A stretch of 64,000 bases of DNA from sequence record LC597490.1. One strand, written 5' to 3'. Below the pieces are notes generated by a model. The model was given only the letters and a program-made list of their open reading frames with translations. It was not told the DNA's origin and made no database searches. Shown here in pieces: positions 24,444-60,817 of this stretch (the stretch's first letter is position 1; each line of letters opens with the position of its first letter). Position numbers and translations under genes: made by a program.

Positions 24444-26522
24444 ATGACTAAATTTGCGAAAAGCTTTTACATTGTAGGAAACCACGATACGGATACATTA
24501 CCAGTAAGAAAGTATGTTATTGACAACATCAGAAGAGACTTTGATTTAGAAGAAGTACCACATGAAGCAGTTGGAAGTTTAGCAGTATTATTATCAGAAA
24601 GAGATGCAAGATTCCGTGTAAACAACGGGCAAGGTAAGTTGTTCTGTTCTTGTGGATATCAAGGTGATGCAGTAACAGTATTTGAAAAGGTAGTTGCGGA
24701 TGATGCCATCTTCCATGTAGGAATGCTTGATGAGGAGAGAGAGGCAGAAGAAAAGAAAACATTTGAACATAACTTCTATGATTTAAAGAGAATCGTGACA
24801 TGCCCAGAGTGTGGTAGCACAGAGCATGAGATTGTAAATGTGTCTGGTGTGGACGCTGTAAAAAATCCTATGTATCTGAAAATCTATCATAATGAGAATG
24901 GTATTTCATTGTCTTATGGTATCCAGAGTTATTACTTCAATCCGAATGTAGAGAAGCTTGGTACGAAGCTGGGCCGAGCACGCATTACATTCTCATATAA
25001 AACAAACATGTTCTACTTTGTACGTGGTGGTAAAGTCCGTAATATCTCTTACGGTACATTCCCAAGTAATACAGCATCAGGAGAGTTCTATGATGTATTC
25101 CAACATGCAAACTACAATGAGGAGTGGAAAGCAATTGTTAAAGAATTCAAGGAGACGATTATTAAGCATATGGGGGCTTTTATTCCAGAAGAGTTGGTTA
25201 ATCTAACAAATGGACACAACCTGATTTTATTCATGGCTAGTATTGTTTGTCCGCACTTAACGATTCTTCCATTCAAGCCAGATACACATGGTTTACGAGA
25301 TGGAGCAAAAGTATTAAGAAAGCTACCACTGAAGAAGAAAGCTGTTACACAGTTCTTAAATGGACCAGTGACAAAAGCGATGACTCCATATGTGAACAAC
25401 CAAGGAGATATTCGTTTCTTTGCAATGGTTACTTCTTTAGTAGAAGACCCGAACTATCGTTTAACATTGTTAAAAACATATAAAGAGTATTGCGACAAGC
25501 ATATCAGAAACAATTGGGGCACAGATAGAATTTCCTCAGTGAAGTCATTTGATATGGTAGTAAATGAAATGAAAAACTATGATTTCCCGCAGGAAGCTAT
25601 TGATTGGTTAAAGTCTCTACATCCAACAGATGCAAGTATGTATCATGCAATGGTTCGTATGAGTACAGAACCAGTTAAGGAGTGGAATCATGAGAAGAGA
25701 GAAATGATTGATACAGGGGAGAAGAAAGTGAATCTTAGTAGTGTAACTTGGTTGACTCGTGACTCACACCGTATGTATCAGGATATCATTCAGGCTCTAC
25801 CAGGTTATGACCTACGTTATAGTGGGAACATGAGAGAGACGCATGACAGACTGACTAGAGACTATGGTCGTGTGAAACAAGCACCACGTACAATCCCTTA
25901 CTCTGAAGATGAAAGAACATATCTAACTGCTTCTTATGGTGGATATGACTTCGTATTACCAGAGTTAACAACAGAGTTAGTAGAATGTGGTCAGGCATTA
26001 GATATCTGCGTAGGTGGATATGGTAATGAGGTAGCTGAGAAACGTACACTGATTATCTTTGTGAAGAAAGAAGATAAGTATGTGGCGTGTATTGAAGTAA
26101 CTCCTGATGGAAACATGTCTCAAGCAAAAGGATATGGCAACAATAGATTCCGTCCACTAGCAGATGATGTGATTGATGCAATTGCACATTGGGCTAATAA
26201 TGGTGGCGTGAGTCTAAGCACGTATGACATGAACTCACACAAACGTAGACTAGAAGAAAAGTACGCACACTTATTCGAACGTCCTGAGTTCTTAGTAAAA
26301 GAATTAGGTAATCCAGAAGAGTCTGTACGTCTAGAGATTACACAAGAGATGCTTGAGCAAGAACCAGTAAGAGCAGAAGCATATCAACCAGAGCCTAATC
26401 CATTTGATGCACTTGCTTTAGAACCTGCACCTGTATATGGAAGAGCACCAGTAGCAGCTAATGTGGGACAACCAATTATGGCAGAATTGATTGGAGACCT
26501 TAACGATGACCTTCCATTCTAA
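24444..26522 (+). CDS. PcfJ-like domain protein with N-terminal Zn-ribbon
   Basis: CSC..CPEC; C-terminal LPELTTELVECGQALDICVGGY..ACIEV..SQAKGYGN fits the PcfJ pattern. Confidence 0.8.
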   Translation: MTKFAKSFYIVGNHDTDTLPVRKYVIDNIRRDFDLEEVPHEAVGSLAVLLSERDARFRVNNGQGKLFCSCGYQGDAVTVFEKVVADDAIFHVGMLDEEREAEEKKTFEHNFYDLKRIVTCPECGSTEHEIVNVSGVDAVKNPMYLKIYHNENGISLSYGIQSYYFNPNVEKLGTKLGRARITFSYKTNMFYFVRGGKVRNISYGTFPSNTASGEFYDVFQHANYNEEWKAIVKEFKETIIKHMGAFIPEELVNLTNGHNLILFMASIVCPHLTILPFKPDTHGLRDGAKVLRKLPLKKKAVTQFLNGPVTKAMTPYVNNQGDIRFFAMVTSLVEDPNYRLTLLKTYKEYCDKHIRNNWGTDRISSVKSFDMVVNEMKNYDFPQEAIDWLKSLHPTDASMYHAMVRMSTEPVKEWNHEKREMIDTGEKKVNLSSVTWLTRDSHRMYQDIIQALPGYDLRYSGNMRETHDRLTRDYGRVKQAPRTIPYSEDERTYLTASYGGYDFVLPELTTELVECGQALDICVGGYGNEVAEKRTLIIFVKKEDKYVACIEVTPDGNMSQAKGYGNNRFRPLADDVIDAIAHWANNGGVSLSTYDMNSHKRRLEEKYAHLFERPEFLVKELGNPEESVRLEITQEMLEQEPVRAEAYQPEPNPFDALALEPAPVYGRAPVAANVGQPIMAELIGDLNDDLPF

Positions 26523-26835
26523 TATATATGGCGCCCCACGAGCGAAGCGAGTAATATTCTTCTTTTTGTGCCAATGGCTGATAAGCCACATATATGCAAA
26601 AAGAATTAAAGTTATCGTACAGAATGTGTACCCTGCGAGGCAACGAGCAGGTAGTACATACTCTGTACACCCTTTGAACAGTCCTGAGCTACGTAGTAGC
26701 GAGTATAAACGAGGAAGGACTGTTCTATGTAAGGGGATGGTTCTTAATCGGCTGGTGACACGCCGATCCATTTTATTTGGCCTTCGGCTGCCAGTGTTCC
26801 GCCTTCGGCTATACAGGGCAGTGGGTATCCATTCG
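26523..26835. other. GC-rich, highly palindromic non-coding region
   Basis: Nested stems GTACAGA/TCTGTAC, GAACAGTCCT/AGGACTGTTC, ATCGGC/GCCGAT, two GCCTTCGGC units, GGTATCC/GGATACC. Confidence 0.6.
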
Positions 26836-26918
26836 GATACCAGTCGGTGGGAGGGTTAGGTTGGAAGGGTATGGTTGTTATGGTATATCACTTCGTGTAA
26901 GGGAAAGGTGGGAATGGT

Positions 26919-27230
26919 ATGGTAAGGAAAGTGTTTCAGGTACAGGTAATCAAGTGTAATAGTGGTTGGGACGCCCATAGGGGCAAGGTCTATGATGTGA
27001 GGGATATTCGGAATCGGAATATGGATGATTTGTATCAGCTATTGGTAACGGAACGGAATACGACTAATATGGATGAGGTGTGTAGGAAAGCTCCGCATCA
27101 GGTAGAGTATCGGGACAATATTTATAAGTCGGGGCGGGCGTGCATTCCAAAGGAGATGGCAGTCCGTGTCGTTATGAATAATGAGGGTAGTTTATGTAAT
27201 CTAAAGGAGGATGAGTATGCAGGTAACTGA
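26919..27230 (+). CDS. Hypothetical protein with the C-terminal N-x6-LK-x-D motif
   Basis: Ends NNEGSLCNLKEDEYAGN. Confidence 0.75.
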   Translation: MVRKVFQVQVIKCNSGWDAHRGKVYDVRDIRNRNMDDLYQLLVTERNTTNMDEVCRKAPHQVEYRDNIYKSGRACIPKEMAVRVVMNNEGSLCNLKEDEYAGN

Positions 27231-27402
27231 CGTGACGTATGTGGCGTATATAGGTGGGTATATAAAGGACAAGGAAGTAGGTAGGTTTACGATTGAGTCG
27301 GCGGTGGAAGATGACCCTGACTTTGAGCAGATGGTTGAGGATAGACAGGTTGAAATGGAAGAAGCAAATGGTTGGGAGAATGTGTACTGGGATAGGGAGT
27401 AA
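27217..27402 (+). CDS. Acidic hypothetical protein
   Basis: Start moved to ATG 27217 (AAGGAGG 6 nt upstream). Confidence 0.75.
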   Translation: MQVTDVTYVAYIGGYIKDKEVGRFTIESAVEDDPDFEQMVEDRQVEMEEANGWENVYWDRE

Positions 27403-27428
27403 TCTCTGTCCCTTTTTTTGTACCGCTA
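27389..27428 (+). terminator. Intrinsic terminator followed by CCGCTA
   Basis: GGGATAGGGA/TCTCTGTCCC stem, T7, CCGCTA at 27423. Confidence 0.7.
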
Positions 27429-27465
27429 TGGTATCATATTTTTATTATGAGCAAGGGGGATTTTT

Positions 27466-27663
27466 ATGGAGCAGTTAGTAACTGGTTTATATACGAGTCA
27501 TGAGGAGTTAGTGGAGGCGGGCTTCGCCTTTATGGAAACTCAATTACATGATGAGGTAAAACCCATTCATACATATAGTAAGGGTAATAAGGTATATTAC
27601 TTCGTGGAGAATAGTCCAGGGGAGTATATGTTTATGTATGGATTGAAAGGGGCAGTTGCATGA
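27466..27663 (+). CDS. Hypothetical protein
   Basis: 65 aa with SD. Confidence 0.75.
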   Translation: MEQLVTGLYTSHEELVEAGFAFMETQLHDEVKPIHTYSKGNKVYYFVENSPGEYMFMYGLKGAVA

Positions 27664-27908
27664 ACTCGCATTGTCTGGGTAACGTCGAAGAGATATATCA
27701 GCAAACGATGGTGGGGCTTGTTGAGCAACTTAAAAAACGCCGTCAAGAGAAAGGGTTAACTCAGAAACAGTTGAGTAAGTTAGCGACCATTGATACGAAA
27801 ACTATCCAGAAGATAGAAACAGGGAAGTGGTTGCCATCCATGCGGAGTTTGATGTTAATGTCCGAGGCATTGGATATGACACTGTTCTTTGATTTACGTA
27901 TTAAGTGA
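27660..27908 (+). CDS. XRE-family helix-turn-helix regulator
   Basis: LKKRRQEKGLTQKQLSKLATIDTKTIQKIETGKWLPSMRSL. Confidence 0.92.
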   Translation: MNSHCLGNVEEIYQQTMVGLVEQLKKRRQEKGLTQKQLSKLATIDTKTIQKIETGKWLPSMRSLMLMSEALDMTLFFDLRIK

Positions 27909-28058
27909 TTTTTGTATATTTATAAGGATATGTTTTATTTACACCGAGGAATCTTGCACAGTCTATACATATTCTTGTATAAATATAGTTTTGTAGAATA
28001 TGAGAAGCGTGGGGACGTTATCTCAAAAAAAATTGAAAATGAAAAGGAGAGATTTACA

Positions 28059-28583
28059 ATGGCAGCATTCGGCGCTAAAGCAACACAAACAGAAGAAACA
28101 AAAGTTCAACAGGAGGGTACTACTGCAACAATGGAGGCACCAAAACCAGAGGCTCCTAAACCGCAAGCACCAACTATGGATGTGAAAGCACCTAGAGAGG
28201 CTCGTGCCGCTACTCTACGTTTTAACAGAGGAGCAAATGACCCAACATGGTTTTTAAATCGTGAGGGAGAGCTTGAAATGGTAACTGATGAAGATGAGAA
28301 CAAGGCGATTGGTATTACAAAGATTTATGCTCGTGCGGCAACAGAAGCACAATTTAACAATGGTATTATTGCGAACGTGTCTATTGATACAATCATTGGA
28401 CGTATTGAGGGACTACAGATTCGTGAAACAAAAGAGCGTGATGGTAACATTCAATTAAGTGAGCCATCTAGTTCTTATATGTCTGGAGACCAAAGAAAGT
28501 ACAATAACTATACGAAACTAACGGCTCCAGTACGTGCTCAGATTTTGAGTCATGTATGGTCACAGTTAAGCCCTGCGGAGTAA
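28059..28583 (+). CDS. SpoVG-like (PC4-fold) nucleic-acid-binding protein
   Basis: Start moved to ATG 28059; ITKIYAR..IIANVSI..RIEGLQIRE..GNIQLSEPS..VRAQILSHV follows the SpoVG element order. Confidence 0.6.
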   Translation: MAAFGAKATQTEETKVQQEGTTATMEAPKPEAPKPQAPTMDVKAPREARAATLRFNRGANDPTWFLNREGELEMVTDEDENKAIGITKIYARAATEAQFNNGIIANVSIDTIIGRIEGLQIRETKERDGNIQLSEPSSSYMSGDQRKYNNYTKLTAPVRAQILSHVWSQLSPAE

Positions 28584-28608
28584 TCCCAGGGTTTTCTTTT
28601 TTCCGCCA
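28571..28608 (+). terminator. Intrinsic terminator followed by CCGCCA
   Basis: CCCTG..GGA-GTAA-TCC..CAGGG plus T-rich tail. Confidence 0.7.
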
Positions 28609-28833
28609 TGCCCAGTAGTTGGGTAGTGGTGTGCCGCTAACAGAGGTTGTCCATTTTAAGGCACCTAGCGGGCTTGTAACGAGGGCGTAGTCTTTTCTGG
28701 TACAAATAGTCTTTGTAGCTGATTGACCCGCCGAGAGGAGGACGAGAATGCGACCAGCACATTGGTTATCACTTATCTTTGCATTCATACTACTATTATG
28801 TATGATACTGATTCGTATACTAGGAGGGATAGT

Positions 28834-29082
28834 ATGAGAGTTATATATGGGGGCTTACAGTTTGATGCTTCGGATATGCATACACCAGAGGGAGTTATTA
28901 ATATATTGGCGGAGTCTTTTCCTGAGTTAGGTAATGGCAATGCTATATATAAGAGGAATGGTAACATACTCCGTATATATATGAAGCCAGCTCAAACGCT
29001 GAAGTCATTCCGCCAACAAGTAGTCTACGAGAACAATAGGACTACTGTCACAACTCTAAAGCAGGAGGTGCGGTATGCGTGA
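28834..29082 (+). CDS. Orphan ubiquitin-like domain with the C-terminal motif
   Basis: Start moved to ATG 28834; MRVIYGG..ILAESFPELGN aligns with the repeat at 54788; ends NNRTTVTTLKQEVRYA. Confidence 0.75.
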   Translation: MRVIYGGLQFDASDMHTPEGVINILAESFPELGNGNAIYKRNGNILRIYMKPAQTLKSFRQQVVYENNRTTVTTLKQEVRYA

Positions 29083-29392
29083 GGAGTATAGAGCTGTACA
29101 GGAAGAGGATTTAATAGGCGAGCCTATATATGTATATATACCCAAACACAGTAACGAACTACTTGATGGTCAGTATATATATGTACGGGAGTATAGTCTA
29201 ACAGGAGACTTCGCCAACCTCCAACATGGCTCTTATCAGATACACAACTGTCCACACAATGATAAACTCCTATCTAGCGAACGCAACTATAGGGAGTACA
29301 ACATGTGCATAGATAAGAGTAGTTGTATAGAGTCCGCAGAGAGCAATACAGCGACAACAAAGTATCTCAAGGTAGAAATACCCTTGGACTAG
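29075..29392 (+). CDS. CxHND-family protein with the C-terminal motif
   Basis: GEPIYV..NCPHND; ends SNTATTKYLKVEIPLD. Confidence 0.8.
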   Translation: MREEYRAVQEEDLIGEPIYVYIPKHSNELLDGQYIYVREYSLTGDFANLQHGSYQIHNCPHNDKLLSSERNYREYNMCIDKSSCIESAESNTATTKYLKVEIPLD

Positions 29393-29565
29393 CTAACGGA
29401 CGAACCAGTGGATATAGGACACGCTAAAAGGGGGTCTGGCACCTTCGGATAGGCGTTCTGGATTCATGACTCACTCAAAGTGTTGTTATATCAACGTTTA
29501 TCCCCTATGTGCTTATATATAGTGTATAGGGGTGTTTTTATGTAAAAGGGGGTATATTTCTCTGT

Positions 29566-29760
29566 ATGGTTAATGAACTATTATCTAATATAAGTGTAAT
29601 ATCTTATGTAGTTATTATATTAGGGGTATTAGTATTTATCTCTTATATAGTTAGTTTCTATAGTAAGGTTATGTTATATGTGTATTATGTACTATCTATT
29701 ATCTTTTATATATATGTAGGAGTAATAGTTATAAAAGTATGGTTAGGGGGCGCCGAGTAG
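29566..29760 (+). CDS. Two-TM membrane protein
   Basis: 64 aa, almost entirely hydrophobic. Confidence 0.65.
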   Translation: MVNELLSNISVISYVVIILGVLVFISYIVSFYSKVMLYVYYVLSIIFYIYVGVIVIKVWLGGAE

Positions 29761-29975
29761 TGGTAGTTGTGAAAGATGATATTCTGGATCACTTTAGGCA
29801 AGCGTTATTAAATGAACGTGAGTATGGTATGTTAATATGTCGTCGGGGTCGTATAGTTACTCTTTACTATATAGATGGTGCTTTTTATATAAGAGGTAAG
29901 AGTACTGTTAAATATGGTATAGCTGATGATTTATTAAGAGAAGAGATATTAACTGGTTATATAACATGGATATAG
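29739..29975 (+). CDS. Hypothetical protein
   Basis: ORF present; true start probably a downstream GTG. Confidence 0.65.
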   Translation: MVRGRRVVVVVKDDILDHFRQALLNEREYGMLICRRGRIVTLYYIDGAFYIRGKSTVKYGIADDLLREEILTGYITWI

Positions 29976-29985
29976 GAGGCGGCCT

Positions 29986-30216
29986 ATGATTAGTTTAGCT
30001 GAAATAGCTTTTGTTACGTACTTGAAAAAGGTATTAAATCATGACAAGGATATTATTCATGTTACAGGTCAAGGTTTATGGGCGACATTAGAATATGATT
30101 CATTTAAGCATTCACTTGTATTATCAGGTGGAAGTGGTAAACATCCTATTAGTGATGAGGAATTTATTAATGCATTGAATAAAGGTAAAGTAGAGATTGT
30201 AGGTGGGCGACTATGA
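29986..30216 (+). CDS. Hypothetical protein, weakly similar to 31424-31633
   Basis: 76 aa, GGAGG SD. Confidence 0.75.
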   Translation: MISLAEIAFVTYLKKVLNHDKDIIHVTGQGLWATLEYDSFKHSLVLSGGSGKHPISDEEFINALNKGKVEIVGGRL

Positions 30217-30470
30217 TGGTGCAATATGGAGAGCATTCATTTGAAATAGCTGGTTTACCTAATCCTGATGATATCATGGAGTTACTACATGAGGTATTCC
30301 CTGAGTTAATCTATAGTGGATACTATCATATAGAAGGTGAGACTATGATTGTTCAATGTAAGTTGGTTACTAAGCTGGCGAACATGCAACGTGCTTTTAA
30401 AGAAAATGTAGCTATTCGTATTACAAATGAAAACCGTGTTGTTTTCTTTAAGAAGGAGATGACTATATGA
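30213..30470 (+). CDS. Orphan ubiquitin-like domain with the C-terminal motif
   Basis: VQYGEHSFEI..DDIMELLHEVFPEL; ends TNENRVVFFKKEMTI. Confidence 0.72.
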   Translation: MMVQYGEHSFEIAGLPNPDDIMELLHEVFPELIYSGYYHIEGETMIVQCKLVTKLANMQRAFKENVAIRITNENRVVFFKKEMTI

Positions 30471-30805
30471 CAAGGTATCAGTTCTTTGTAAAGGTAAAGG
30501 ATGAGGATGAATTACCACGGGATTATTTTATGTGGCGACCTTATGTTGGTAAGGTGTTATTGGTAGAAGGGACTTCTAAATGTTTTCGTGATAATGTTGT
30601 GTTACATATAGTGAAGTGTGAACACAATGATGAGCATTATGGTGAAGACCACAAGCAATATCAGAAAGGCTGGGCAAGTATCTTAGATAAAGCTGTTACT
30701 TTAGTTAATGTAGTAGAGGAAACTAAGGATGCAGTGGAAATAGATATGAGCAATGTCATTGTTATGAAGGATTGGAGTGGTAGGCGTGGCAGTCCAGTTA
30801 AGTGA
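30467..30805 (+). CDS. CxHND-family protein without the C-terminal motif
   Basis: VGKVLLV..VKCEHND. Confidence 0.8.
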   Translation: MTRYQFFVKVKDEDELPRDYFMWRPYVGKVLLVEGTSKCFRDNVVLHIVKCEHNDEHYGEDHKQYQKGWASILDKAVTLVNVVEETKDAVEIDMSNVIVMKDWSGRRGSPVK

Positions 30806-30874
30806 TATAGGTATTATTGTATTCCTGATTGTTATGATTGCAGGGGATATTTATTTACGAGGAGATGATGATTA

Positions 30875-31309
30875 ATGCCGAACGTAGTTACAGTTAAATT
30901 ACCTGATGGTAGAACAAATGCTTATGAGCCGACATCTAGTGAAGCAACTCGTCTTGATATTATGCTTTCACTTATGAGCATCTATGGTGCAGAAGTTAGA
31001 TTTGATGGTATTCATCATCGTTATATTGTAAGTCCACCTGTTGAACAAGATGAAATAGATGCACGTATTCGAGTTGCATTAGAAACTTGTGTATTAACAC
31101 ACGGTGAATTAACAGACAAGGATAGGTTTTTACTCAAGCTATTAATGGAACGCAAAGAAATACCTATTGAATATCGTAATGAAGAATGCATTTTAAAAGT
31201 AAGCGCTGATTACGACCACTTTACTTCTGTTATTAATGCTGTTGAGTATGTCTTTGGCTTAATGGATGTTGTTCATCATATTAGTGTAGGTAGGTTAACT
31301 TTAAGATAG
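30875..31309 (+). CDS. Hypothetical protein
   Basis: 144 aa with SD. Confidence 0.75.
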   Translation: MPNVVTVKLPDGRTNAYEPTSSEATRLDIMLSLMSIYGAEVRFDGIHHRYIVSPPVEQDEIDARIRVALETCVLTHGELTDKDRFLLKLLMERKEIPIEYRNEECILKVSADYDHFTSVINAVEYVFGLMDVVHHISVGRLTLR

Positions 31310-31319
31310 GAGGGTTCTT

Positions 31320-31424
31320 ATGAATAAGTGGGGTTGGCTAGGCGTGACTCTTGTTGGTGCAGTTATTAGTTTTTATGGTAATAAGAAAGTACAAGAGGAA
31401 GTAAGAAAGGAGCTGGGTATTTAA
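31320..31424 (+). CDS. 34-aa single-TM peptide
   Basis: Hand-read MNKWGWLGVTLVGAVISFYGNKK...; GGAGG SD. Confidence 0.6.
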   Translation: MNKWGWLGVTLVGAVISFYGNKKVQEEVRKELGI

Positions 31425-31633
31425 TGTCTATAGCTGAAAAGTTATTATTAAATATGATTCGTAAAGAGGTTACTTATAAGCCTGTTGATGTTGTGTATTG
31501 TACGAATGTTGTTCAATTAAATTATAGCTCTCCTAAAGGAATGTTTTATGTAAGTGTAAATGGTAAAAGTGAAGAATTAAGTGGTGAAAGATTAATTCAG
31601 TTAATCAATATTAATGAATTACGTCCATTATAA
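31424..31633 (+). CDS. Hypothetical protein
   Basis: 69 aa with SD. Confidence 0.75.
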   Translation: MSIAEKLLLNMIRKEVTYKPVDVVYCTNVVQLNYSSPKGMFYVSVNGKSEELSGERLIQLININELRPL

Positions 31634-31646
31634 GGAGGAATTGTTT

Positions 31647-31763
31647 ATGTGGTATTCAACTAAAGATACTCGTTGGAAAAAAGAATCATTGATTGTGGGG
31701 ATTATTGGTTCTACTTTATTATCAGCAGTTATTACAGCAGGTTATACATTAACAGTGTTTTAG
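31647..31763 (+). CDS. 38-aa single-TM peptide
   Basis: Hand-read MWYSTKD..LIVGIIGSTLLSAVITAG; AAGGAGG SD. Confidence 0.6.
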   Translation: MWYSTKDTRWKKESLIVGIIGSTLLSAVITAGYTLTVF

Positions 31764-31772
31764 GAGGAAGTT

Positions 31773-31973
31773 TTGTTGGATTTTTTACGTATGATCTTTG
31801 TGGATAATGAATTTATTATGCGGGCAGCGTTTTTACTAACGACTTGGATTATTGTGGGATACTCCATCAGCCGTGTAATAAGAGCAAGAAAACTATGTGA
31901 TATTATGACTTGGTTAACTATTGTTACCGTAAGCTATTTGTTTACGACTCTAGTTATTCAAGTCATGATATAG
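31773..31973 (+). CDS. Two-TM membrane protein
   Basis: Hydrophobic 66 aa with SD. Confidence 0.7.
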   Translation: MLDFLRMIFVDNEFIMRAAFLLTTWIIVGYSISRVIRARKLCDIMTWLTIVTVSYLFTTLVIQVMI

Positions 31974-31985
31974 GGGGAAGTTGTT

Positions 31986-32237
31986 ATGAATTTAACTCCA
32001 GTACTTGTAATTGGATTAACAATATTGCTATTAATGATTGGTTCGGCAGCCATATTTATTTTGAGTTTATTGTTTTTAGAGGTATCTAAAATTAGCAAGA
32101 ATATACTAGCGAAAGATTACAACCAAGGTGTTAAGTATTTCTTTATTGTTATTTTATTATCTGTAAGTGAATTTATCATGGTATTAGCTGTTATTGCTCT
32201 TTATACTATGATTGCATCTTATGTAGGAGGTATGTAA
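31986..32237 (+). CDS. Two-TM membrane protein (hairpin family)
   Basis: TM-short polar loop-TM. Confidence 0.75.
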   Translation: MNLTPVLVIGLTILLLMIGSAAIFILSLLFLEVSKISKNILAKDYNQGVKYFFIVILLSVSEFIMVLAVIALYTMIASYVGGM

Positions 32238-35699: not shown

Positions 35700-36053
35700 A
35701 TGAATCCTGAATATATGCCAAATAAAGACCCTGGTAAAGTAAAACGTAAGACAATAGGTGAACCATTCCTAGTAGAAATATTAGGTCCTACTCCAAAAGG
35801 TTATGCATTTAAAGCTGGAGATAAGATTGTTGTTATGGAATACAACAGAACTTATAACATGGATGATGGTGATTTATTTGTTGTGCCTTGTGACCATAAT
35901 GATGCAGCAATTAGAAAGCATGGTGGTCAACCGAATAGACACTATGCATATGATATAGCTGGTATGTATGTTCATAAAAGAAGGTATAAAAAATATGTAC
36001 CTATAAACATAGCAACTATTTCTGGGTTTAAGGAGGATAAGTTTTATGAATGA
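35700..36053 (+). CDS. CxHND-family protein with the C-terminal motif
   Basis: GEPFLVE..VPCDHND; ends INIATISGFKEDKFYE. Confidence 0.8.
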   Translation: MNPEYMPNKDPGKVKRKTIGEPFLVEILGPTPKGYAFKAGDKIVVMEYNRTYNMDDGDLFVVPCDHNDAAIRKHGGQPNRHYAYDIAGMYVHKRRYKKYVPINIATISGFKEDKFYE

Positions 36054-36381
36054 AAAAGATATGATGCTTAATAGACCTGAAATAAAAAGACGTGGTGCAT
36101 ATGAACTATATGGAAAGCCATATCTTGTTCAGGTAAATGAAGAATTTCCTTCTATCATGTTGAGAACACTAGTTGGCAAGGTTGTTGTCGTAGGTGAGAT
36201 TTTCGGTTACGTAGATCACTATGGCGGTGGTATTACTGCTCCAGATGTTGTATTAGTACCTTGTGACCATAACGATAAGATATTTGGTTTAGAAAACTTA
36301 CCTGAAGATTATTGTAAAGGGATTTGTCACATTAATCGAAAGTGGTTAACAAAAATTGAAGAAGAAATTAATTATGATTAA
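36046..36381 (+). CDS. CxHND-family protein without the C-terminal motif
   Basis: KDMMLNRPE..GKPYLVQ..VPCDHND; close paralog of the next gene. Confidence 0.8.
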   Translation: MNEKDMMLNRPEIKRRGAYELYGKPYLVQVNEEFPSIMLRTLVGKVVVVGEIFGYVDHYGGGITAPDVVLVPCDHNDKIFGLENLPEDYCKGICHINRKWLTKIEEEINYD

Positions 36382-36739
36382 AAAAGATATGTTATTAAAT
36401 CGACCTGAAGTAAATACTAGTATGTTTACATCACCAATAGGTCAGCCTTTTTTAGTAAAAGTAAGCAAGGAGTTTCCTACTAAGAAGTTTAGAAAATTAG
36501 TAGGAAAAGTAATTGTTGTTAGCTGTTATGGTAGATGGTCTAATGGAAATAAAATAAAAACTGAAGGTAATGAATTACTTGTTTTACCTTGTGAGCATAA
36601 TGATAGATTATTAGGTAGTAATGCACCAAGGCTTTATAAGGAAGGTTATTATACCATTAAGAATATGTGGTTGGAGAAGCTTCCAGATACAAACAATCAA
36701 TCAGCTACTAAGCTGAAAGAAGAAAACCCATTTGAGTAG
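36374..36739 (+). CDS. CxHND-family protein with the C-terminal motif
   Basis: Start moved to ATG 36374; GQPFLVK..LPCEHND; ends TNNQSATKLKEENPFE. Confidence 0.8.
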   Translation: MIKKDMLLNRPEVNTSMFTSPIGQPFLVKVSKEFPTKKFRKLVGKVIVVSCYGRWSNGNKIKTEGNELLVLPCEHNDRLLGSNAPRLYKEGYYTIKNMWLEKLPDTNNQSATKLKEENPFE

Positions 36740-49463: not shown

Positions 49464-49952
49464 ATGATTAGATTTTATATTTTCAACCATACAACTGTTA
49501 GAAGGAAGACAGAAGCGTTCTTTCAGGAACATGGATTAAAATATGAGGTAAAATCGACAAGGGAAATATCATTCAACTTGTTTTGTGATATGTTAAGTAA
49601 AGCTGTTGATGGAGTAGGAGATATTATTAATCTTAAATCTCCAATTTTTCAAAAGCACAATGTTAACCCAGAAGAACTAACGTTAAGTCAGTTATATGCT
49701 TTTGGAATGCAACACATTGATATCTTTAAGAAGCCAATCATCTTTAATGGTGAATTAACTTATGGTGGTATCACTGAGAATTCATTAAACAGTTTTTTAC
49801 CAAGCAAATCACGTAGACAAACACTCAATCGAATCCTGACTCACATTCGCAAGATTGAAGACAAGAGAGAGGAGGAGAGAATAAGAGAAGAGCTGAAACA
49901 ACTAGAATTGAAACGACAACGAAGAAAGAAAGCGAGTGTGTCTGCAAAATGA
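49464..49952 (+). CDS. Spx/ArsC-family regulator homolog lacking CXXC
   Basis: Colinear with B. subtilis Spx: DGVGDII.LKSPIFQKHNVN.EEL.L.QLY..KKPII..FLP.K.R; CTSC replaced by TTVR. Confidence 0.8.
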   Translation: MIRFYIFNHTTVRRKTEAFFQEHGLKYEVKSTREISFNLFCDMLSKAVDGVGDIINLKSPIFQKHNVNPEELTLSQLYAFGMQHIDIFKKPIIFNGELTYGGITENSLNSFLPSKSRRQTLNRILTHIRKIEDKREEERIREELKQLELKRQRRKKASVSAK

Positions 49953-54787: not shown

Positions 54788-55639
54788 ATGCGTAAAGTAG
54801 TATATGGTTCAACAACAGTAGACATCGAGGACAACAACTTAACAGTGGAGGACATTCGTGAAGTAATGTCTGAAACATACCCTGAGTTAGCAAATGCAAC
54901 ACACACTGAGCGTGATGGTGTTATTGAGTTTAAGGTACAGGCGGGCACGAAAGGTGCTCTTCGTGTTGTTAAGTATGGTTCAACTACAATCGACATCGAA
55001 GATGATGCGTTAACTGTTAATGATATCCGTGAAGTTATGTCGGAAACTTACCCTGAATTGGCGAATGCATCTCATACACAAGAGGGTAACGTTATCGAGT
55101 TCAAGGTGCAAGCTGGTACAAAAGGAGCGCTCCGTATTGTAAAATACGGTTCGACTTCTATTGATATCGAGGACGATGCTTTAACAGTCAACGATATCCG
55201 TGAGGTAATGTCTGAGACTTACCCAGAGCTTGCTAACGCTTCTCATACGCAAGAAGGGAACGTTATTGAGTTTAAAGTCCAAGCAGGTACGAAAGGTGCT
55301 CTCCGTGTTGTAAAATACGGAAGCACTTCTATCGACATTGAGGATGATGCATTGACTGTAAATGACATCAGAGAGGTTATGTCAGAAACATATCCTGAGT
55401 TAGCAAACGCTTCTCATACTCAGGAAGGAAATGTCATCGAATTTAAAGTACAAGCTGGTACAAAGGGTGCTTTACGAGTAGTAAAATATGGTTCTACTAC
55501 AATTGATATCGAAGACGACGCACTAACTGTTAACGATATTCGTGAAGTAATGTCAGAAACGTATCCAGAACTAGCAAATGCATCTCATACTCAAGAGGGC
55601 AATGTGATCGAATTTAAAGTGCAAGCAGGAACTAAAGGT
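54788..55639 (+). repeat. Five tandem 171-bp coding repeats
   Basis: Units begin at 54788 (168 bp), 54956, 55127, 55298, 55469; proteins nearly identical, many third positions differ. Confidence 0.95.
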
Positions 55640-55687
55640 GGTCTTGAGTTCTTCAAAGCTATTGCACCAAAATTAAGAAAGAAGTAA
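54788..55687 (+). CDS. Penta-ubiquitin-like precursor (PRTRC protein C-like units ending AGTKG)
   Basis: ATG 54788 after AAAGGGAG; 56 + 4x57 aa repeats with YPEL and AGTKG, plus a 15-aa tail. Confidence 0.88.
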   Translation: MRKVVYGSTTVDIEDNNLTVEDIREVMSETYPELANATHTERDGVIEFKVQAGTKGALRVVKYGSTTIDIEDDALTVNDIREVMSETYPELANASHTQEGNVIEFKVQAGTKGALRIVKYGSTSIDIEDDALTVNDIREVMSETYPELANASHTQEGNVIEFKVQAGTKGALRVVKYGSTSIDIEDDALTVNDIREVMSETYPELANASHTQEGNVIEFKVQAGTKGALRVVKYGSTTIDIEDDALTVNDIREVMSETYPELANASHTQEGNVIEFKVQAGTKGGLEFFKAIAPKLRKK

Positions 55688-58507: not shown

Positions 58508-59890
58508 ATGACAAAGGCAGCAGCAAAAGCAAACGGAATGGCAGCGCTAAGAGCGAAAATGGCAGGACAAACTATGGGATTCCACACTGGTCCTCAAACA
58601 GCTGAGGTTTATGCACAAAAACCAACAAACATCGTTACAGCAGGTAATGGTGTTTTCCGTGTAATCCAAAAGGATATCGGTGCTTTCATTACGAAACTAG
58701 CTGATGGTAAGATTCCAGGTTTACCTGAAATGCAAGAAGGAGTGGAATTAGCGATTCCAAAGATTCCTTACAAGTATTGGTTACAAGTATTATCATTCTA
58801 TAAAGATGTAAATGCAAAAGATGGTACAGAAGCATCTGTTATCTTCTTCTGGAATACGAATAATGTTCAGATTCCAACTCATTATGACCCAACTCCTGCA
58901 CAAGCAGCGAAGGGTGAGTTAGGGCCAGAAGTAAAAGGTTTAACGCAAGATGGTCAATTAATCATTTATTGTCCAGTACAAAAGAACTCTGGTAGTTTAT
59001 CAGACTTTACGAAAGATTCATTTGTAGATTGGTTACGTCTTAATACAGCTCAGTTATTAGAAACACATTCTCATAATACAATGGGTGCGTTCTGGTCAGG
59101 AACAGATGACAGCAATGAGAACTATCCACAGTTCTACGGTGTTATGGGTAAAGTTTCAAGCCCACAACCTGAGTATCGTTTCCGTTATGCTTTAGGTAAA
59201 GAAAAGTTCGATTGTGAGTTATGGGAACTATTCGAAAAACCTCAAGTAAAAATGACTGAAACAGTTATTGTTAACATCCCAGGTGTAGGTGAGTACAAAG
59301 ATGAGCAAGAAGTGAAGAACTTAGACTTCAATGGTCCATGGCCGATGGTTGAATATCCAGATGATTGGATGGGTCAACATAGTAAGAGTGTATACACACC
59401 AACTTACACAACTCCGTACCAACGTAAAACATATGGTGCAGCAGGAACTCAAGTTCACGGAGGAGCAGGTGGTGGTAACTTTCCCAGTCTCCACGGTTCA
59501 GAAGCCTGGGGAGACGGCTGGGGGGATTCAGGCTACTGGCCTGGCGTTTCTGGTCAATCTGGCCTTGGCATGGGTGCGGAAGTAATCGAAGGTGACTTCG
59601 GATACGGAGAAGGTACCAGGCAAGGGCAAGAATCGTTCGAAGAATCGTACAAAAAACTCTTACAAGAACCAGTCGCAGGGCAGGGGACGTGGACGTTCGC
59701 AAAAGCATGGGAAAAGAAAGTAAGTGAAGGTCAGCTTGAAACAGATGGAACAACTGTTGATTATGTAATCATGGAACCAACTGAAGCTGAAGAACGTGAT
59801 GAAATTCATGCATTAATTGGTGAATTAATTAACTTTGGTACGTATGCGACCATCGTTGATATTGCAAGAGATGAACACCTCGTAGAGTAG
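58508..59890 (+). CDS. JAB/MPN+ metallo-isopeptidase (PRTRC protein A-like)
   Basis: ETHSHNTMGAFWSGTDD motif; upstream catalytic Glu in GTEAS; Gly-rich C-terminal extension. Confidence 0.9.
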   Translation: MTKAAAKANGMAALRAKMAGQTMGFHTGPQTAEVYAQKPTNIVTAGNGVFRVIQKDIGAFITKLADGKIPGLPEMQEGVELAIPKIPYKYWLQVLSFYKDVNAKDGTEASVIFFWNTNNVQIPTHYDPTPAQAAKGELGPEVKGLTQDGQLIIYCPVQKNSGSLSDFTKDSFVDWLRLNTAQLLETHSHNTMGAFWSGTDDSNENYPQFYGVMGKVSSPQPEYRFRYALGKEKFDCELWELFEKPQVKMTETVIVNIPGVGEYKDEQEVKNLDFNGPWPMVEYPDDWMGQHSKSVYTPTYTTPYQRKTYGAAGTQVHGGAGGGNFPSLHGSEAWGDGWGDSGYWPGVSGQSGLGMGAEVIEGDFGYGEGTRQGQESFEESYKKLLQEPVAGQGTWTFAKAWEKKVSEGQLETDGTTVDYVIMEPTEAEERDEIHALIGELINFGTYATIVDIARDEHLVE

Positions 59891-59959: not shown

Positions 59960-60817
59960 ATGAAACTTGAAAAAACTTATTCTTTAGATACTATGTACAA
60001 AATTGCTAAACACTTTATCGTAATTGGTGCTGGTGGTAATGGTGGTTACTTTATTCCACAATTAGCTCGTATGGTTTCTGTTCAAAACAAAATTCGTGAA
60101 GTACAACGTTTACCGTTACATCGTATTACAATCATTGAAGCTGATGGCGTAGAAGCAAAGAACTTAACTCGTCAAAACTTTATCTCATCTGATATTGATA
60201 AGAATAAAGGTGAAGTAATGGCAGCTCGTTATGCTCGTGCATTTGGTCTTGAAATTGGATTAGTAGCTCAGTATCTTGATAGTCCAGATATGTTAGCTAA
60301 GATTATGCGTGAAAGCAAATCAAAAGAAACACCAGTTATTTGCGGAATGGTAGATAACAATAAAACTCGTAAGTTAATGCATGATGCATTTAAATCATAT
60401 GATGGTGCATTTTATCTTGATGCAGGTAATGAAGAGTTTGCAGGACAATGTGTTCTAGGTTATAACCATCGTAAAGATCGTTTTGTTTTACCAAGAGAAG
60501 GTGGAGATTCGATTCAAAGCTTTAGCTTACCAAGTGTTTGTGAGATGTTCCCAGAGGTAATGGAAGCGAAAGATAAGTTGCCAACTGAAATGTCTTGTGC
60601 GGAACGTTCTGAATCAGCTCCTCAGAATATTTATACAAACATGACAGCAGCAAATGAAGCATTAGGATTTATTAATCATTTATTAACTAGTAATGCAACT
60701 GGTACAACACCAACTGGATTACGTGTTCATGCAACAATCTTTGATTCTCGTACAATGAATAAAACAACTCGTTTTAATCGTACAAGTGAACTTGAAAAAT
60801 ATGCAGCGGGGAAATAA
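59960..60817 (+). CDS. ThiF/E1-like adenylating enzyme (PRTRC ThiF-like)
   Basis: VIGAGGNGG, EADGVEAKNLTRQNF, VDNNKTR, YLDAGN; candidate catalytic Cys in EMSCAER; no CxxC Zn pairs. Confidence 0.92.
   Translation: MKLEKTYSLDTMYKIAKHFIVIGAGGNGGYFIPQLARMVSVQNKIREVQRLPLHRITIIEADGVEAKNLTRQNFISSDIDKNKGEVMAARYARAFGLEIGLVAQYLDSPDMLAKIMRESKSKETPVICGMVDNNKTRKLMHDAFKSYDGAFYLDAGNEEFAGQCVLGYNHRKDRFVLPREGGDSIQSFSLPSVCEMFPEVMEAKDKLPTEMSCAERSESAPQNIYTNMTAANEALGFINHLLTSNATGTTPTGLRVHATIFDSRTMNKTTRFNRTSELEKYAAGK

Follow-up and report, generated by a model that had tools for sequence, protein, structure and literature searches.

Recent work has shown that bacterial ubiquitin-like conjugation acts in anti-phage defence, and versions of such systems are also encoded by phages, for example in poly-ubiquitin-like (poly-Ubl) operons, which to our knowledge are uncharacterised. 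Eukaryotes commonly have Ubl-fold proteins that do not take part in conjugation and are used as interaction domains fixed within a protein; examples are the integral ubiquitin-like domain proteins Rad23, Dsk2 and parkin, and the engineered uncleavable Ub(G76V) fusions belong here as well. Searches of the literature returned no phage case of a Ubl-fold protein used in this way without conjugation, and no paper on PRTRC-type systems in phages. A related architecture has been described for the polyUbl operons by Iyer, Burroughs and Aravind in 2006 (PMC1779556). The Ubl of the tail assembly protein I (TAPI) of phages lambda and T1 keeps the conserved glycine, and cleavage of this protein by the JAB domain of TAPK has been predicted (PMC1779556).

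The stretch of 64,000 nucleotides analysed here (the window) belongs to Bacillus phage vB_BceM_WH1, a giant phage with its own ubiquitin-like conjugation operon. The poly-Ubl protein of this operon, gp211, is the reference for all comparisons below; it scores 95 bits in five stretches against Pfam PF14454 and 73.6 bits against NCBIfam TIGR03738. Two further genes, gp146 and gp151, referred to as the orphans, lie about 26 kb from the operon, with the genes for E1 and JAB being 28–31 kb downstream (Table 1). The separation of 25 kb in the original prediction agrees with this distance, and the coordinates given there for both genes are right when checked against the ORFs and the annotation. The orphans are surrounded by small accessory genes in plus-strand arrays. 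A strong ribosome-binding site, AGGAGGG, precedes gp146, and gp150 and gp151 overlap in the sequence ATGA. The terminator-like hairpin after gp147 would set gp146 and gp147 apart as a two-gene unit. In the GC-rich spacers flanking these two genes, no structured RNA is found (folding z-score of -1.4, no Rfam match, no tRNA). In a search of sequencing runs, the locus was found in no RNA run, and DNA runs gave mosaic relatives only.

Table 1. Coordinates of the orphan genes, their parts and neighbours, and the reference genes of the conjugation operon (positions in the window)
Feature	Position	Strand	Basis
Candidate sigma-70-like promoter ahead of gp146	28778..28806	+	consensus scan only, 9/12 matches; weak
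gp146, orphan Ubl 1, whole gene, 82 aa	28834..29082	+	ORF and annotation
gp146 residues 1–57, predicted Prok_Ub-type β-grasp head, ending at the Lys aligned with K of GTKG	28834..29004	+	hhalign, AF2
gp146 residues 63–82, VVYENNRTTVTTLKQEVRYA, shared C-terminal tag, predicted disordered	29020..29079	+	regex, leave-out HMM, pLDDT <50
AAGCAGGAGG, K-Q-E codons of the gp146 tag, Shine-Dalgarno sequence of gp147 (start 29075)	29059..29068	+	
gp147, 105 aa, CxHND family, also tagged, probably co-transcribed with gp146	29075..29392	+	synteny in Edson, L010
Terminator-like hairpin after gp147, 12 pairs and T run	29502..29541	+	
gp151, orphan Ubl 2, whole gene, 85 aa	30213..30470	+	ORF and annotation
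gp151 residues 1–54, predicted Prok_Ub-type β-grasp head, ending in TK, then Leu	30213..30374	+	AF2, alignment
gp151 residues 68–85, IRITNENRVVFFKKEMTI, shared C-terminal tag	30414..30467	+	regex, leave-out HMM
AAGAAGGAG, K-K-E codons of the gp151 tag, Shine-Dalgarno sequence of gp152 (start 30467)	30450..30458	+	
gp152, 112 aa, CxHND family, downstream of gp151	30467..30805	+	
gp211, poly-Ubl: five 57-aa Prok_Ub units, each ending GTKG, and cap	54788..55687	+	
gp215, JAB / PRTRC_A-like	58508..59890	+	profile scores below curated cut-offs
gp216, ThiF-family E1 (PRTRC_ThiF-like)	59960..60817	+	

When compared with the known systems, the orphans are closest to Prok_Ub, the PRTRC system protein C (PF14454, TIGR03738), which is likewise a small ββαββ β-grasp protein with the Y-G, [FY]PEL and T-K motifs, and the homology is detected at the profile level with the units of gp211 and of many other phages. 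Unlike this family, the orphans lack the C-terminal glycine, are not located beside the E1 and JAB genes and carry an extension of 25–30 residues; they reach neither curated model, and gp146 evolves about 10-fold faster than the true unit at the protein level. Like TAPI, the orphans are predicted to consist of a phage β-grasp Ubl fused to a C-terminal extension, but they are without the glycine and far from the JAB gene.

The original prediction held that both ORFs align with the poly-Ubl unit, and this alignment is confirmed. The E-values are 7e-6 (gp146) and 8e-5 (gp151) in a BLASTP comparison with gp211, and 3e-19 and 1.2e-12, respectively, when the heads are compared by phmmer with all 1167 ORFs of the phage. 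From a set of 1.84 billion proteins, a profile of the orphan N-termini alone (residues 1–58) retrieves almost only multi-unit poly-Ubl proteins, with E-values from 2.6e-23 to 1e-3. The profile comparison proposed with the original prediction, done by hhalign with units from many phages, gives a probability of 97.5% and an E-value of 7.3e-12, and aligns residues 2–57 of the orphans with unit columns 4–56 (52 columns), up to the lysine of GTKG. The core pattern of the conjugated unit (Y-G ... [FY]PEL ... T-K) is retained in the heads. Against the curated models Pfam Prok_Ub and NCBIfam PRTRC_C, gp146 and gp151 are unmatched at E-values up to 1, and also at E-values up to 10 when the complete phage sequence is scanned in six frames; the curated cut-offs, being 25 bits for PF14454 and 45.95 bits for TIGR03738, are reached by neither orphan, and PHROGs has no match for them. 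Judged from these alignments, gp146 and gp151 are of the same family origin as the poly-Ubl unit. Another Ubl-like ORF, at 5632–5988 of contig L009, was dropped, its hhalign probability being below 3% and not significant.

The models calculated with AF2 are in agreement with the β-grasp fold that the original prediction requires. The head of gp146 is modelled with strands at residues 2–5 and 8–11, a helix at 18–28 and strands at 37–42 and 45–50 (pLDDT of about 84), and the same ββαββ order is seen in the head of gp151 (pLDDT of about 78), whereas both tails are predicted to be disordered (pLDDT <50). The alignments used by AF2 contained poly-Ubl units, such that these models are partly dependent on the homology described above; the ESM Atlas result, which is obtained from the single sequence and in which 64 of the 100 feature matches are Prok_Ub clusters, agrees with the AF2 fold. 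The best Foldseek matches are PRTRC system protein C, and in the PDB nothing significant is found by Foldseek, the scores being depressed by the disordered tail. VIA-align with trimming is more informative here than Foldseek against the PDB, and the neighbours that it finds for the heads are nearly all Ubl, SUMO, MoaD and Urm1 domains, with Z-scores of 3.7–5.2. Taken as absolute values, such Z-scores (at most 5.2) are low, which is normal for domains of 50 residues. Both heads are thus predicted to have the Ubl/β-grasp fold.

The absence of the glycine terminus, also part of the original prediction, is confirmed by the alignment, in which GTKG is replaced by QTLK-S in gp146 and by VTK-L in gp151, followed in both cases by 25–31 more residues. 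The gp151 relative at 95% identity reads GTK-L, and the relatives of gp151 keep GTK-L-A, with a leucine in place of the final glycine of the unit junction GTK-G-A. As read from these sequences, the glycine needed for adenylation and the GTKG/A junction are lost in both orphans, and gp146 and gp151 are predicted to be non-conjugatable. They would be neither adenylated by E1 nor released by JAB, and would therefore act non-covalently only. Precursors with C-terminal extensions give rise to poly-Ubl units as well as to many other Ubls, and the T-K of GTKG is retained in the orphans, as would be expected if they were precursors that a protease trims to a conjugatable Ubl. This is the least probable of the explanations considered, and hardly credible: around the position that corresponds to the cleavage point (K-S, K-L), glycine and other small residues are absent, purifying selection acts on the extension as well (ω of 0.12–0.29), and its motif is common to about 40 unrelated proteins.

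This motif is the C-terminal tag, with which both orphans end, as originally claimed. The motif in the form first proposed is found in 44 ORFs of the genome, compared with 1.4 ± 1.3 after shuffling. For the tag set, the definition N-x6-hydrophobic-[KR]-x-[ED] was used, located 2–8 residues before the stop codon. A leave-out HMM of the 39 other tags finds the tags of gp146 and gp151 with E-values of 0.047 and 0.081 against 1167 ORFs, ranking them second and fourth, respectively, among the more than 1100 non-training ORFs, and both matches end 3 residues from the C-terminus. P0014, a relative of gp151, ends NGATLRLLKQELII. From the sequences compared, the tag is specific to the clade, has the form NNx-x5-hydrophobic-K-x-E-x3-5 and recurs in about 40 further small accessory proteins encoded by WH1. 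The heads to which it is joined come from at least seven paralogue families. Like the orphans, the other tagged proteins, about 40, have the motif at an equal distance from the stop codon and are encoded in small plus-strand gene arrays. The head of the tagged protein gp278 matches the tail sheath (phmmer), and in this protein, as in the orphans, the head copies part of a larger phage protein; most other tagged heads, unlike those of the orphans, are in paralogue families without a detectable donor protein.

The sequence of the tag fits ψ-K-x-E/D in 37 of the 41 tags, and its predicted disorder would make it accessible. It is therefore conceivable that the hydrophobic-K-x-E element is a SUMO-type acceptor read by the E2 of the phage, with the orphans being Ubl-fold substrates, for example chain primers. 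Such a role seems improbable when considering that the lysine is not invariant, arginine being found in its place in four of the 41 tags and also in the Edson orthologue of gp146, and that in KLEB27-3, a distant phage which has the operon, the 150 kb examined contain no tag of the WH1 type. Moreover, the ribosome-binding site of the next gene overlaps the tag codons in 26 of the 41 tags, and this overlap by itself favours K-[QKE]-E.

The same overlap raises the question of whether the tag is a mere by-product of the Shine-Dalgarno sequence of the downstream gene, in which case the fusion would be meaningless at the protein level. The K-x-E codons are AAG CAG GAG in gp146 and AAG AAG GAG in gp151, being Shine-Dalgarno-like and located 16–17 nt ahead of the next start, such that these two genes alone do not separate a role in the protein from a role in ribosome binding. 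Where a start follows, GAG is enriched, being used in 16 of 26 tags compared with 29% genome-wide. In the remaining 15 of the 41 tags, no start follows at this distance, and 11 of these 15 use GAA, GAT or GAC rather than GAG at the E/D position; because tags without a following start use such non-Shine-Dalgarno codons, the motif is kept at the protein level. Neither the NNx part further upstream nor the constant spacing from the stop codon is accounted for by a ribosome-binding site, and neither is the finding of so many more matching ORFs than expected after shuffling. The codon and spacing analysis of the 41 tags thus largely refutes the by-product explanation, which is rejected as a whole explanation and is very improbable. 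In gp146 and gp151, the K-x-E codons do serve both purposes.

The orphans are confined to the WH1/Edson clade. Orthologues of gp146 are found at 96, 82 and 62% identity, and the relatives of gp151 are P0003 (95%), P0014 (47%), which is encoded on a phage contig of 229 kb, and a copy in L010 that is truncated. Only two close homologues are present in a set of 5.8 G proteins, and IMG/VR has no further relatives. In Edson, gp151 is missing, and in KLEB27-3 the operon is present and an orphan is absent from the examined 150 kb. When comparing WH1 with Edson, dN is 0.26 and ω is 0.25 for gp146, whereas the values for the true Ubl, gp211, are 0.025 and 0.045; the change of gp146 at the protein level is thus about 10 times, and its ω about 5 times, that of the true Ubl. 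For E1 and the E2 candidate, dN is 0.04–0.05, and these proteins are 91–93% conserved. The value of ω is about 0.25 in the head as well as in the tail, and both parts are under purifying selection. The faster rate of gp146 would still allow a single interface, such as that with E1 or JAB, to be kept. In one or both orphans, residues that are invariant in the units are gone, namely the N-A after PEL, the Phe of β4, G54 and G57. In the gene arrays, each orphan is followed by a gene of the CxHND family, and a functional couple of the two was considered and dropped: gp147 and gp152 are not significantly similar by BLASTP, the gene next to the gp151 relative in L009 encodes a membrane protein, and the Cys and His are not invariant. 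That this family is abundant in the array is the best explanation of the adjacency.

These data bear on the role that was originally proposed for the heads, namely that they bind the E1, E2 or JAB of the phage and are either decoys or inhibitors of these enzymes, or adaptors that bring them to the partner of the tag. Heads acting in this way would recall the UBL-UBA shuttle proteins of eukaryotes or the uncleavable Ub(G76V) fusions. The parts of this proposal that concern the proteins themselves hold, the orphans being tagged homologues with a predicted Ubl fold and no glycine terminus, whereas binding to E1, E2 or JAB is unsupported. The proposal agrees with the true homology of the heads to the conjugated unit and the conservation of its core pattern, and with the relatives of gp151, where only the leucine in place of the final glycine distinguishes GTK-L-A from the junction. 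Wherever an orphan was found, the operon is present too, namely in WH1, in Edson and on contig L009 with its E1 P0028, but these phages are close relatives, such that the co-occurrence is not independent evidence. Among the tagged heads, those of the orphans are the only ones that match a protein of the conjugation operon (phmmer); the notion that they are the only direct link between the two systems stands in this respect, and a functional link is unsupported. The rate of gp146, set against the conservation of E1 and the E2 candidate, the loss of the invariant residues, the operon-bearing KLEB27-3 without orphans in the examined 150 kb and the absence of gp151 from Edson all count against heads that serve as decoys or adaptors for Ubl-binding enzymes, and this role is rather unlikely.

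In the reading that we consider most likely, and hold with moderate confidence, gp146 and gp151 are Ubl-derived binding heads recruited into the set of tagged accessory proteins of the phage. They would be paralogues that have diverged from the Prok_Ub (PRTRC-C type) unit of this phage; in both of them the head of about 55 residues is kept and the GTKG end has become an uncleavable continuation without glycine, consisting of a linker of about 10–15 residues and then the tag. The tag may dock the orphans, like the other tagged proteins, onto one common partner, with the Ubl-derived head as the variable binding module. Since the evolution of the head resembles that of the accessory genes nearby and not that of the true Ubl, its target is probably no longer one of the enzymes of conjugation. 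The architecture of head and tag fits a Ubl fold without a conjugatable end plus a putative second interaction element. This resembles Rad23, Dsk2, parkin and the Ub(G76V) fusions, in which a ubiquitin fold without a free Gly-Gly is fixed in a protein with a second interaction element and works by non-covalent recognition, as may, by analogy, also be the case for the orphans. Unlike Rad23, Dsk2 and parkin, with which they share only the ancestry of the β-grasp fold, the orphans would have a short disordered peptide as the second element, not a UBA or enzyme domain.

If this reading is correct, the modifier of the phage was duplicated, and the copies lost their reactive end and were fused to a peptide label that is specific to the lineage. 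It is also possible, though unlikely, that these natural uncleavable Ubl–tag fusions couple the conjugation machinery to a hub that recognises the tag, as a viral counterpart of the UBL shuttles and adaptors; the phage would then steer or time conjugation on or near the approximately 40 tagged proteins. Both gp146 and gp151 may serve as baits for Ubl-fold recognisers in infected cells and for whatever binds the common tag. Should the heads have ceased to bind conjugation enzymes, they would be one more case of a β-grasp domain reused as a small binding scaffold, and the link between the two systems would be historical, not functional.

In Bacillus phage vB_BceM_WH1 (LC597490.1; 229,829 bp; host B. 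cereus), of which the window covers bases 124001-188000, the proteins gp146 and gp151 (the orphans) are shown to consist of a predicted beta-grasp head derived from the Prok_Ub family, without a reactive end, followed by a short linker and a shared C-terminal peptide (the tag). Pairwise BLASTP similarities are modest (E 7e-6 for gp146 and 8e-5 for gp151 against the poly-Ubl protein gp211, and 9e-7 between gp146 and gp151), and neither protein reaches the Pfam or NCBIfam models. The similarity to the poly-Ubl unit is nevertheless real, because it is stronger in an orphan-only profile search, in hhalign and in a within-phage phmmer search. The orphan-only profile, which contains residues 1-58 of gp146, gp151 and two close homologues but no poly-Ubl unit, was searched against 1.84 billion representative proteins and gives 24 hits at E ≤1e-3. 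Apart from the orphans' own clusters, these are nearly all poly-Ubl proteins with 2-8 matched stretches, the best including P0004 (2.6e-23), P0006 (3.5e-21) and P0007 (2.5e-20). Against an alignment of 17 units of different poly-Ubl proteins, hhalign gives a probability of 97.5% (E 7.3e-12) and pairs unit columns 4-56 with orphan residues 2-57, which is the entire unit through the Lys of GTKG. The heads alone, searched against the 1167 ORFs of the phage, find gp211 at 3e-19 (gp146) and 1.2e-12 (gp151). The alignment of both ORFs with the poly-Ubl unit, as proposed in the original prediction, is therefore significant. A profile of units and orphans together finds no additional copy in WH1 and only the gp146 orthologue in phage Edson, a relative at ~88% DNA identity.

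Coordinates of the orphans, the reference operon genes and other features (window positions unless an accession or contig is given)
Feature	Coordinates	Size or units	Remarks
gp146	28834-29082	82 aa	annotated "hypothetical protein"
gp151	30213-30470	85 aa	annotated "hypothetical protein"
gp211 (poly-Ubl)	54788-55687	five 57-residue units	Pfam Prok_Ub 95 bits in five stretches; NCBIfam PRTRC_C 73.6 bits
gp215	downstream of gp211		weak match to Prok-JAB and PRTRC_A
gp216	downstream of gp211		ThiF-family E1; closest to PRTRC_ThiF
CxHND family	29075-29392, 30467-30805, 35700-36053, 36046-36381, 36356-36739		five in window
CxHND family	L009 4048-5311		four in tandem
Promoter-like site	28778-28806		consensus scan only
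Hairpin and T run	29502-29541	12-bp hairpin	consensus scan only
GC-richer spacers	26523-26918, 28584-28833, 29393-29565		
gp202	49464-49952		Spx-like regulator
gp014	LC597490.1 5590-6165		outside window
gp028	LC597490.1 14353-14985, minus strand		outside window
gp034	LC597490.1 17770-18348		ClpP proteolytic subunit; outside window
gp278	LC597490.1 216277-216588	103 aa	outside window
KLEB27-3 operon	OM634661.1 167647-173637	four-unit poly-Ubl	

The predicted folds are also Ubl-like. In the AlphaFold2 models, whose input alignments included poly-Ubl units, the order of the secondary structure elements is identical: strands 2-5 and 8-11, helix 18-28 and strands 37-42 and 45-50 in gp146 (head pLDDT ~84, tail <50 from residue 56), and strands 2-5 and 8-11, helix 18-28 with a short helix 31-35, and strands 36-41 and 44-49 in gp151 (head pLDDT ~78, tail <50 from residue 53). 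When compared with 48,161 PDB chains by VIA-align, the neighbours are almost all ubiquitin-like (Ubl domains, Fubi, SUMO, ISG15, Urm1, MoaD and TtuB), with Z 3.7-5.2 over 45-59 aligned residues and an rmsd of mostly 2-3 Å; these absolute structural scores are low, in line with the 50-residue domain size. Foldseek against the PDB gives no significant match, and against the AlphaFold DB clusters the top match of both orphans is "PRTRC system protein C" (E 1e-2 and 3.5e-2; probability 0.93). In the ESM Atlas, with single-sequence input, Prok_Ub clusters account for 64 of 100 feature hits; structurally, a 57-aa viral cluster and PRTRC-C come closest (TM 0.57 by query; 0.77 and 0.63 by target). Many gp216 homologues carry the JGI name "PRTRC genetic system ThiF family protein".

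The C-terminal end of the head differs from that of the conjugatable unit. In the multiple alignment, A-G-T-K-G of the unit corresponds to A-Q-T-L-K-S in gp146, M-A-T-Q-K-Y in Edson and L-V-T-K-L-A in gp151. The close homologue P0003 (95% identical to gp151) has L-G-T-K-L-A-N and the inter-unit junction of gp211 has G-T-K-G-A-L, so gp151 resembles a unit plus junction with the final Gly replaced by Leu. Both orphans continue for 25-31 residues after the head, and neither has an adenylatable Gly or a cleavable GTKG/A junction, confirming the predicted absence of the Gly terminus. Of the residues that are invariant in units from 17 sources (Y7, P33, E34, N37, A38, F49, G54, K56 and G57), only the Y, P, E and K are retained throughout the orphans, and the Asn in gp146 alone. 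All conjugatable units (gp211; P0004-P0024) have an invariant N-A-[S/T/E/D]-type motif directly after [FY]PEL, plus F49 and G54-T-K-G57; gp151 has lost this set and gp146 part of it, and the set may define the surface recognised by E1, E2 or JAB. P0018, a stand-alone single Ubl of 56 aa on a 1.2-kb ENA contig, ends in SGSKA and is most similar to gp151 (36% identity); it could be a relative of the orphans that lacks the tag, or else a one-unit modifier capped by Ala.

The tag motif, searched 2-8 residues before the stop codon in the whole reassembled genome, occurs in 44 of 1167 ORFs, compared with 1.4 ± 1.3 when the last 40 residues are shuffled (maximum 6 in 200 rounds), and 41 of these lie within plus-strand small-gene arrays (genome 150.9-170.2, 190-193, 201.5-208.8 and 215-216.6 kb). 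With a leave-out HMM trained on the remaining 39 tags, gp146 takes rank 2 (E 0.047, proteome) and gp151 rank 4 (E 0.081) of >1100 ORFs not used in training, and both matches stop 3 residues short of the C-terminus; the orphans thus do carry the shared tag, as had been claimed. A 229-kb phage contig encodes a relative of gp151, P0014, whose C-terminal end, NGATLRLLKQELII, is a cleaner version of the tag. Tag-like ends are also seen in gp014 (…NNDDALTSMRHEESLS; E 0.1 with the same HMM) and gp028 (…NNIAALSFLRQEDKEWEKE; E 0.002), which are larger proteins not within the small-gene arrays.

It was considered whether [LF]K-x-E is no more than an in-frame reading of the next gene's Shine-Dalgarno sequence. 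The tag codons are AAG CAG GAG G in gp146 and AAG AAG GAG in gp151, with the starts of gp147 and gp152 16 and 17 nt further on, respectively, and in 26 of the 41 tags a start codon follows 10-22 nt past the Lys codon; these tags have Shine-Dalgarno-like codons, with GAG in 16 of 26 (29% genome-wide) and a mean AGGAGG match of 4.9/6. The other 15 tags persist without a following start, on which ground this was rejected as a full explanation; their codons are mostly AAA/GTA/GAA-like (mean match 3.7/6), and K-x-E/D and the upstream N are retained. This makes the tag a feature of the protein itself that in many cases, including both orphans, is dual-coded with a ribosome-binding site.

Another proposal is that the tag is the acceptor site of the phage E2. 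Apart from WH1 and its relatives, only phage KLEB27-3 in the collection combines a poly-Ubl protein (four units, 50% identity) with the operon; its gene order matches that of WH1 (unit gene, three unknown genes, PRTRC_A-like gene, ThiF), and it has no orphan Ubl. In the 150 kb examined (1-50 and 100-200 kb), the tag motif occurs in 2 of 1075 ORFs, about the chance level, and no small-gene C-terminus has a WH1-type ending, so at least there the operon occurs without the tag. This argues against an acceptor site, and so does the Arg that stands in place of the Lys in the gp146 orthologue of Edson and in 4 of the 41 WH1 tags. WH1 encodes a ClpP subunit and an Spx-like regulator, as does KLEB27-3, which raises the idea of the tag as a candidate degradation signal.

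Orthologues of gp146 are 96% (P0001), 82% (P0002, contig L010) and 62% (Edson) identical. By the Nei-Gojobori method its dN/dS is ~0.25 for the whole gene, and values of 0.22-0.35 (head) and 0.12-0.29 (tail) place both parts under purifying selection. Relatives of gp151 are 95% and 47% identical, and contig L010 has a further, truncated copy at its end; none was found in Edson, and IMG/VR has no relative. Conservation within the gp151 family is higher in the linker, KLANMQRA[FL]K, than in the head. The orphans occur only in the WH1/Edson clade.

Divergence between WH1 and Edson
Gene	Identity	dN	omega	dS
gp211 (true Ubl)	95.7%	0.025	0.045	0.57
gp216 (E1)	91%	0.052	0.15	0.34
gp214 (E2 candidate)	92.5%	0.042	0.14	0.32
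gp215 (JAB)	82%	0.12	0.21	0.58
gp146 (orphan)	62%	0.26	0.25	1.07
gp147 (neighbour)	61%	0.26	0.26	1.00

The gp146-gp147 cassette, an apparent two-gene unit with a promoter-like site and a terminal hairpin, has a dS of ~1.0 (window 28834-29392 versus L008 5001-5556), compared with 0.2-0.65 in the flanking genes, which suggests exchange among phages with a more distant relative, as in a mosaic accessory array. Mosaicism is also visible in metagenome-run contigs: in one relative (run X2; window 30223-30476), gp151 is missing and another gene, with the tag-like end ...FKQEVMF* and with AAGCAGGAGG serving as the ribosome-binding site, lies directly upstream of the gp152 homologue. Three spacers are GC-richer than the surrounding AT-rich gene array; Rfam gives nothing at E up to 0.1 over window 26000-32000, no tRNA is found in these spacers, and the folding z-score of the two that were folded (28584-28833 and 29393-29565) is about -1.4, which is not significant.

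The tagged heads form at least seven paralogue families without a Pfam domain. By phmmer within the phage, similarity to a larger phage protein is limited to three heads, those of the two orphans (to gp211) and that of gp278 (to the tail sheath gp102, E 1.3e-5); gp278 is a second example of a larger phage protein with a tagged partial copy. The neighbours gp147 and gp152 belong to a paralogue family of 105-127 residues, most of them tagged, in which a GKVxxV-type strand precedes a C-x-H-N-D motif; no member matches Pfam or PHROG, and gp147 and gp152 are not significantly similar by BLASTP. Because some relatives have other residues (G, T, A, E) in place of the Cys and His, the motif is probably structural and not a catalytic pair. 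The order of a Ubl gene followed by a CxHND gene is not read as a functional couple, because in contig L009 a membrane protein gene follows the gp151 relative.

Since the orphans could be neither activated nor released, they would act non-covalently, the tag bringing them to a common recogniser of all tagged proteins and the head giving the specific contact. The original prediction of non-conjugatable, tagged proteins holds, and its proposed decoy or adaptor role, in which the head is a faithful mimic still contacting E1, E2 or JAB, is somewhat disfavoured: the dN of gp146 is 0.26 versus 0.025 for gp211, unit-invariant residues are lost and the distribution is patchy. For these reasons a faithful mimic is considered unlikely, and we lean towards a repurposed binding head. 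At the profile level the orphan domain belongs with Prok_Ub/PRTRC-C, but the orphans fail on three defining traits of this family: they miss the curated model score and lack the terminal Gly and the E1 and JAB neighbourhood.

In working mode, the nearest analogues of the orphans are the eukaryotic integral UBL-domain proteins and the uncleavable Ub(G76V) fusions. Bacterial polyUbl operons and Ubl families without a terminal Gly have been described, as has the lambda TAPI Ubl, in which the Gly is retained and cleavage by a JAB is predicted (Iyer et al. 2006, PMC1779556). A literature search found no paper on vB_BceM_WH1 and none that deals with phage PRTRC-type systems or with non-conjugatable Ubl proteins of phages. 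By themselves, the orphans are no evidence for joint working of the conjugation and tag systems. They are UBL-domain proteins in a phage, derived from the phage's own modifier, and provide a useful experimental handle on these two larger unknowns of WH1.
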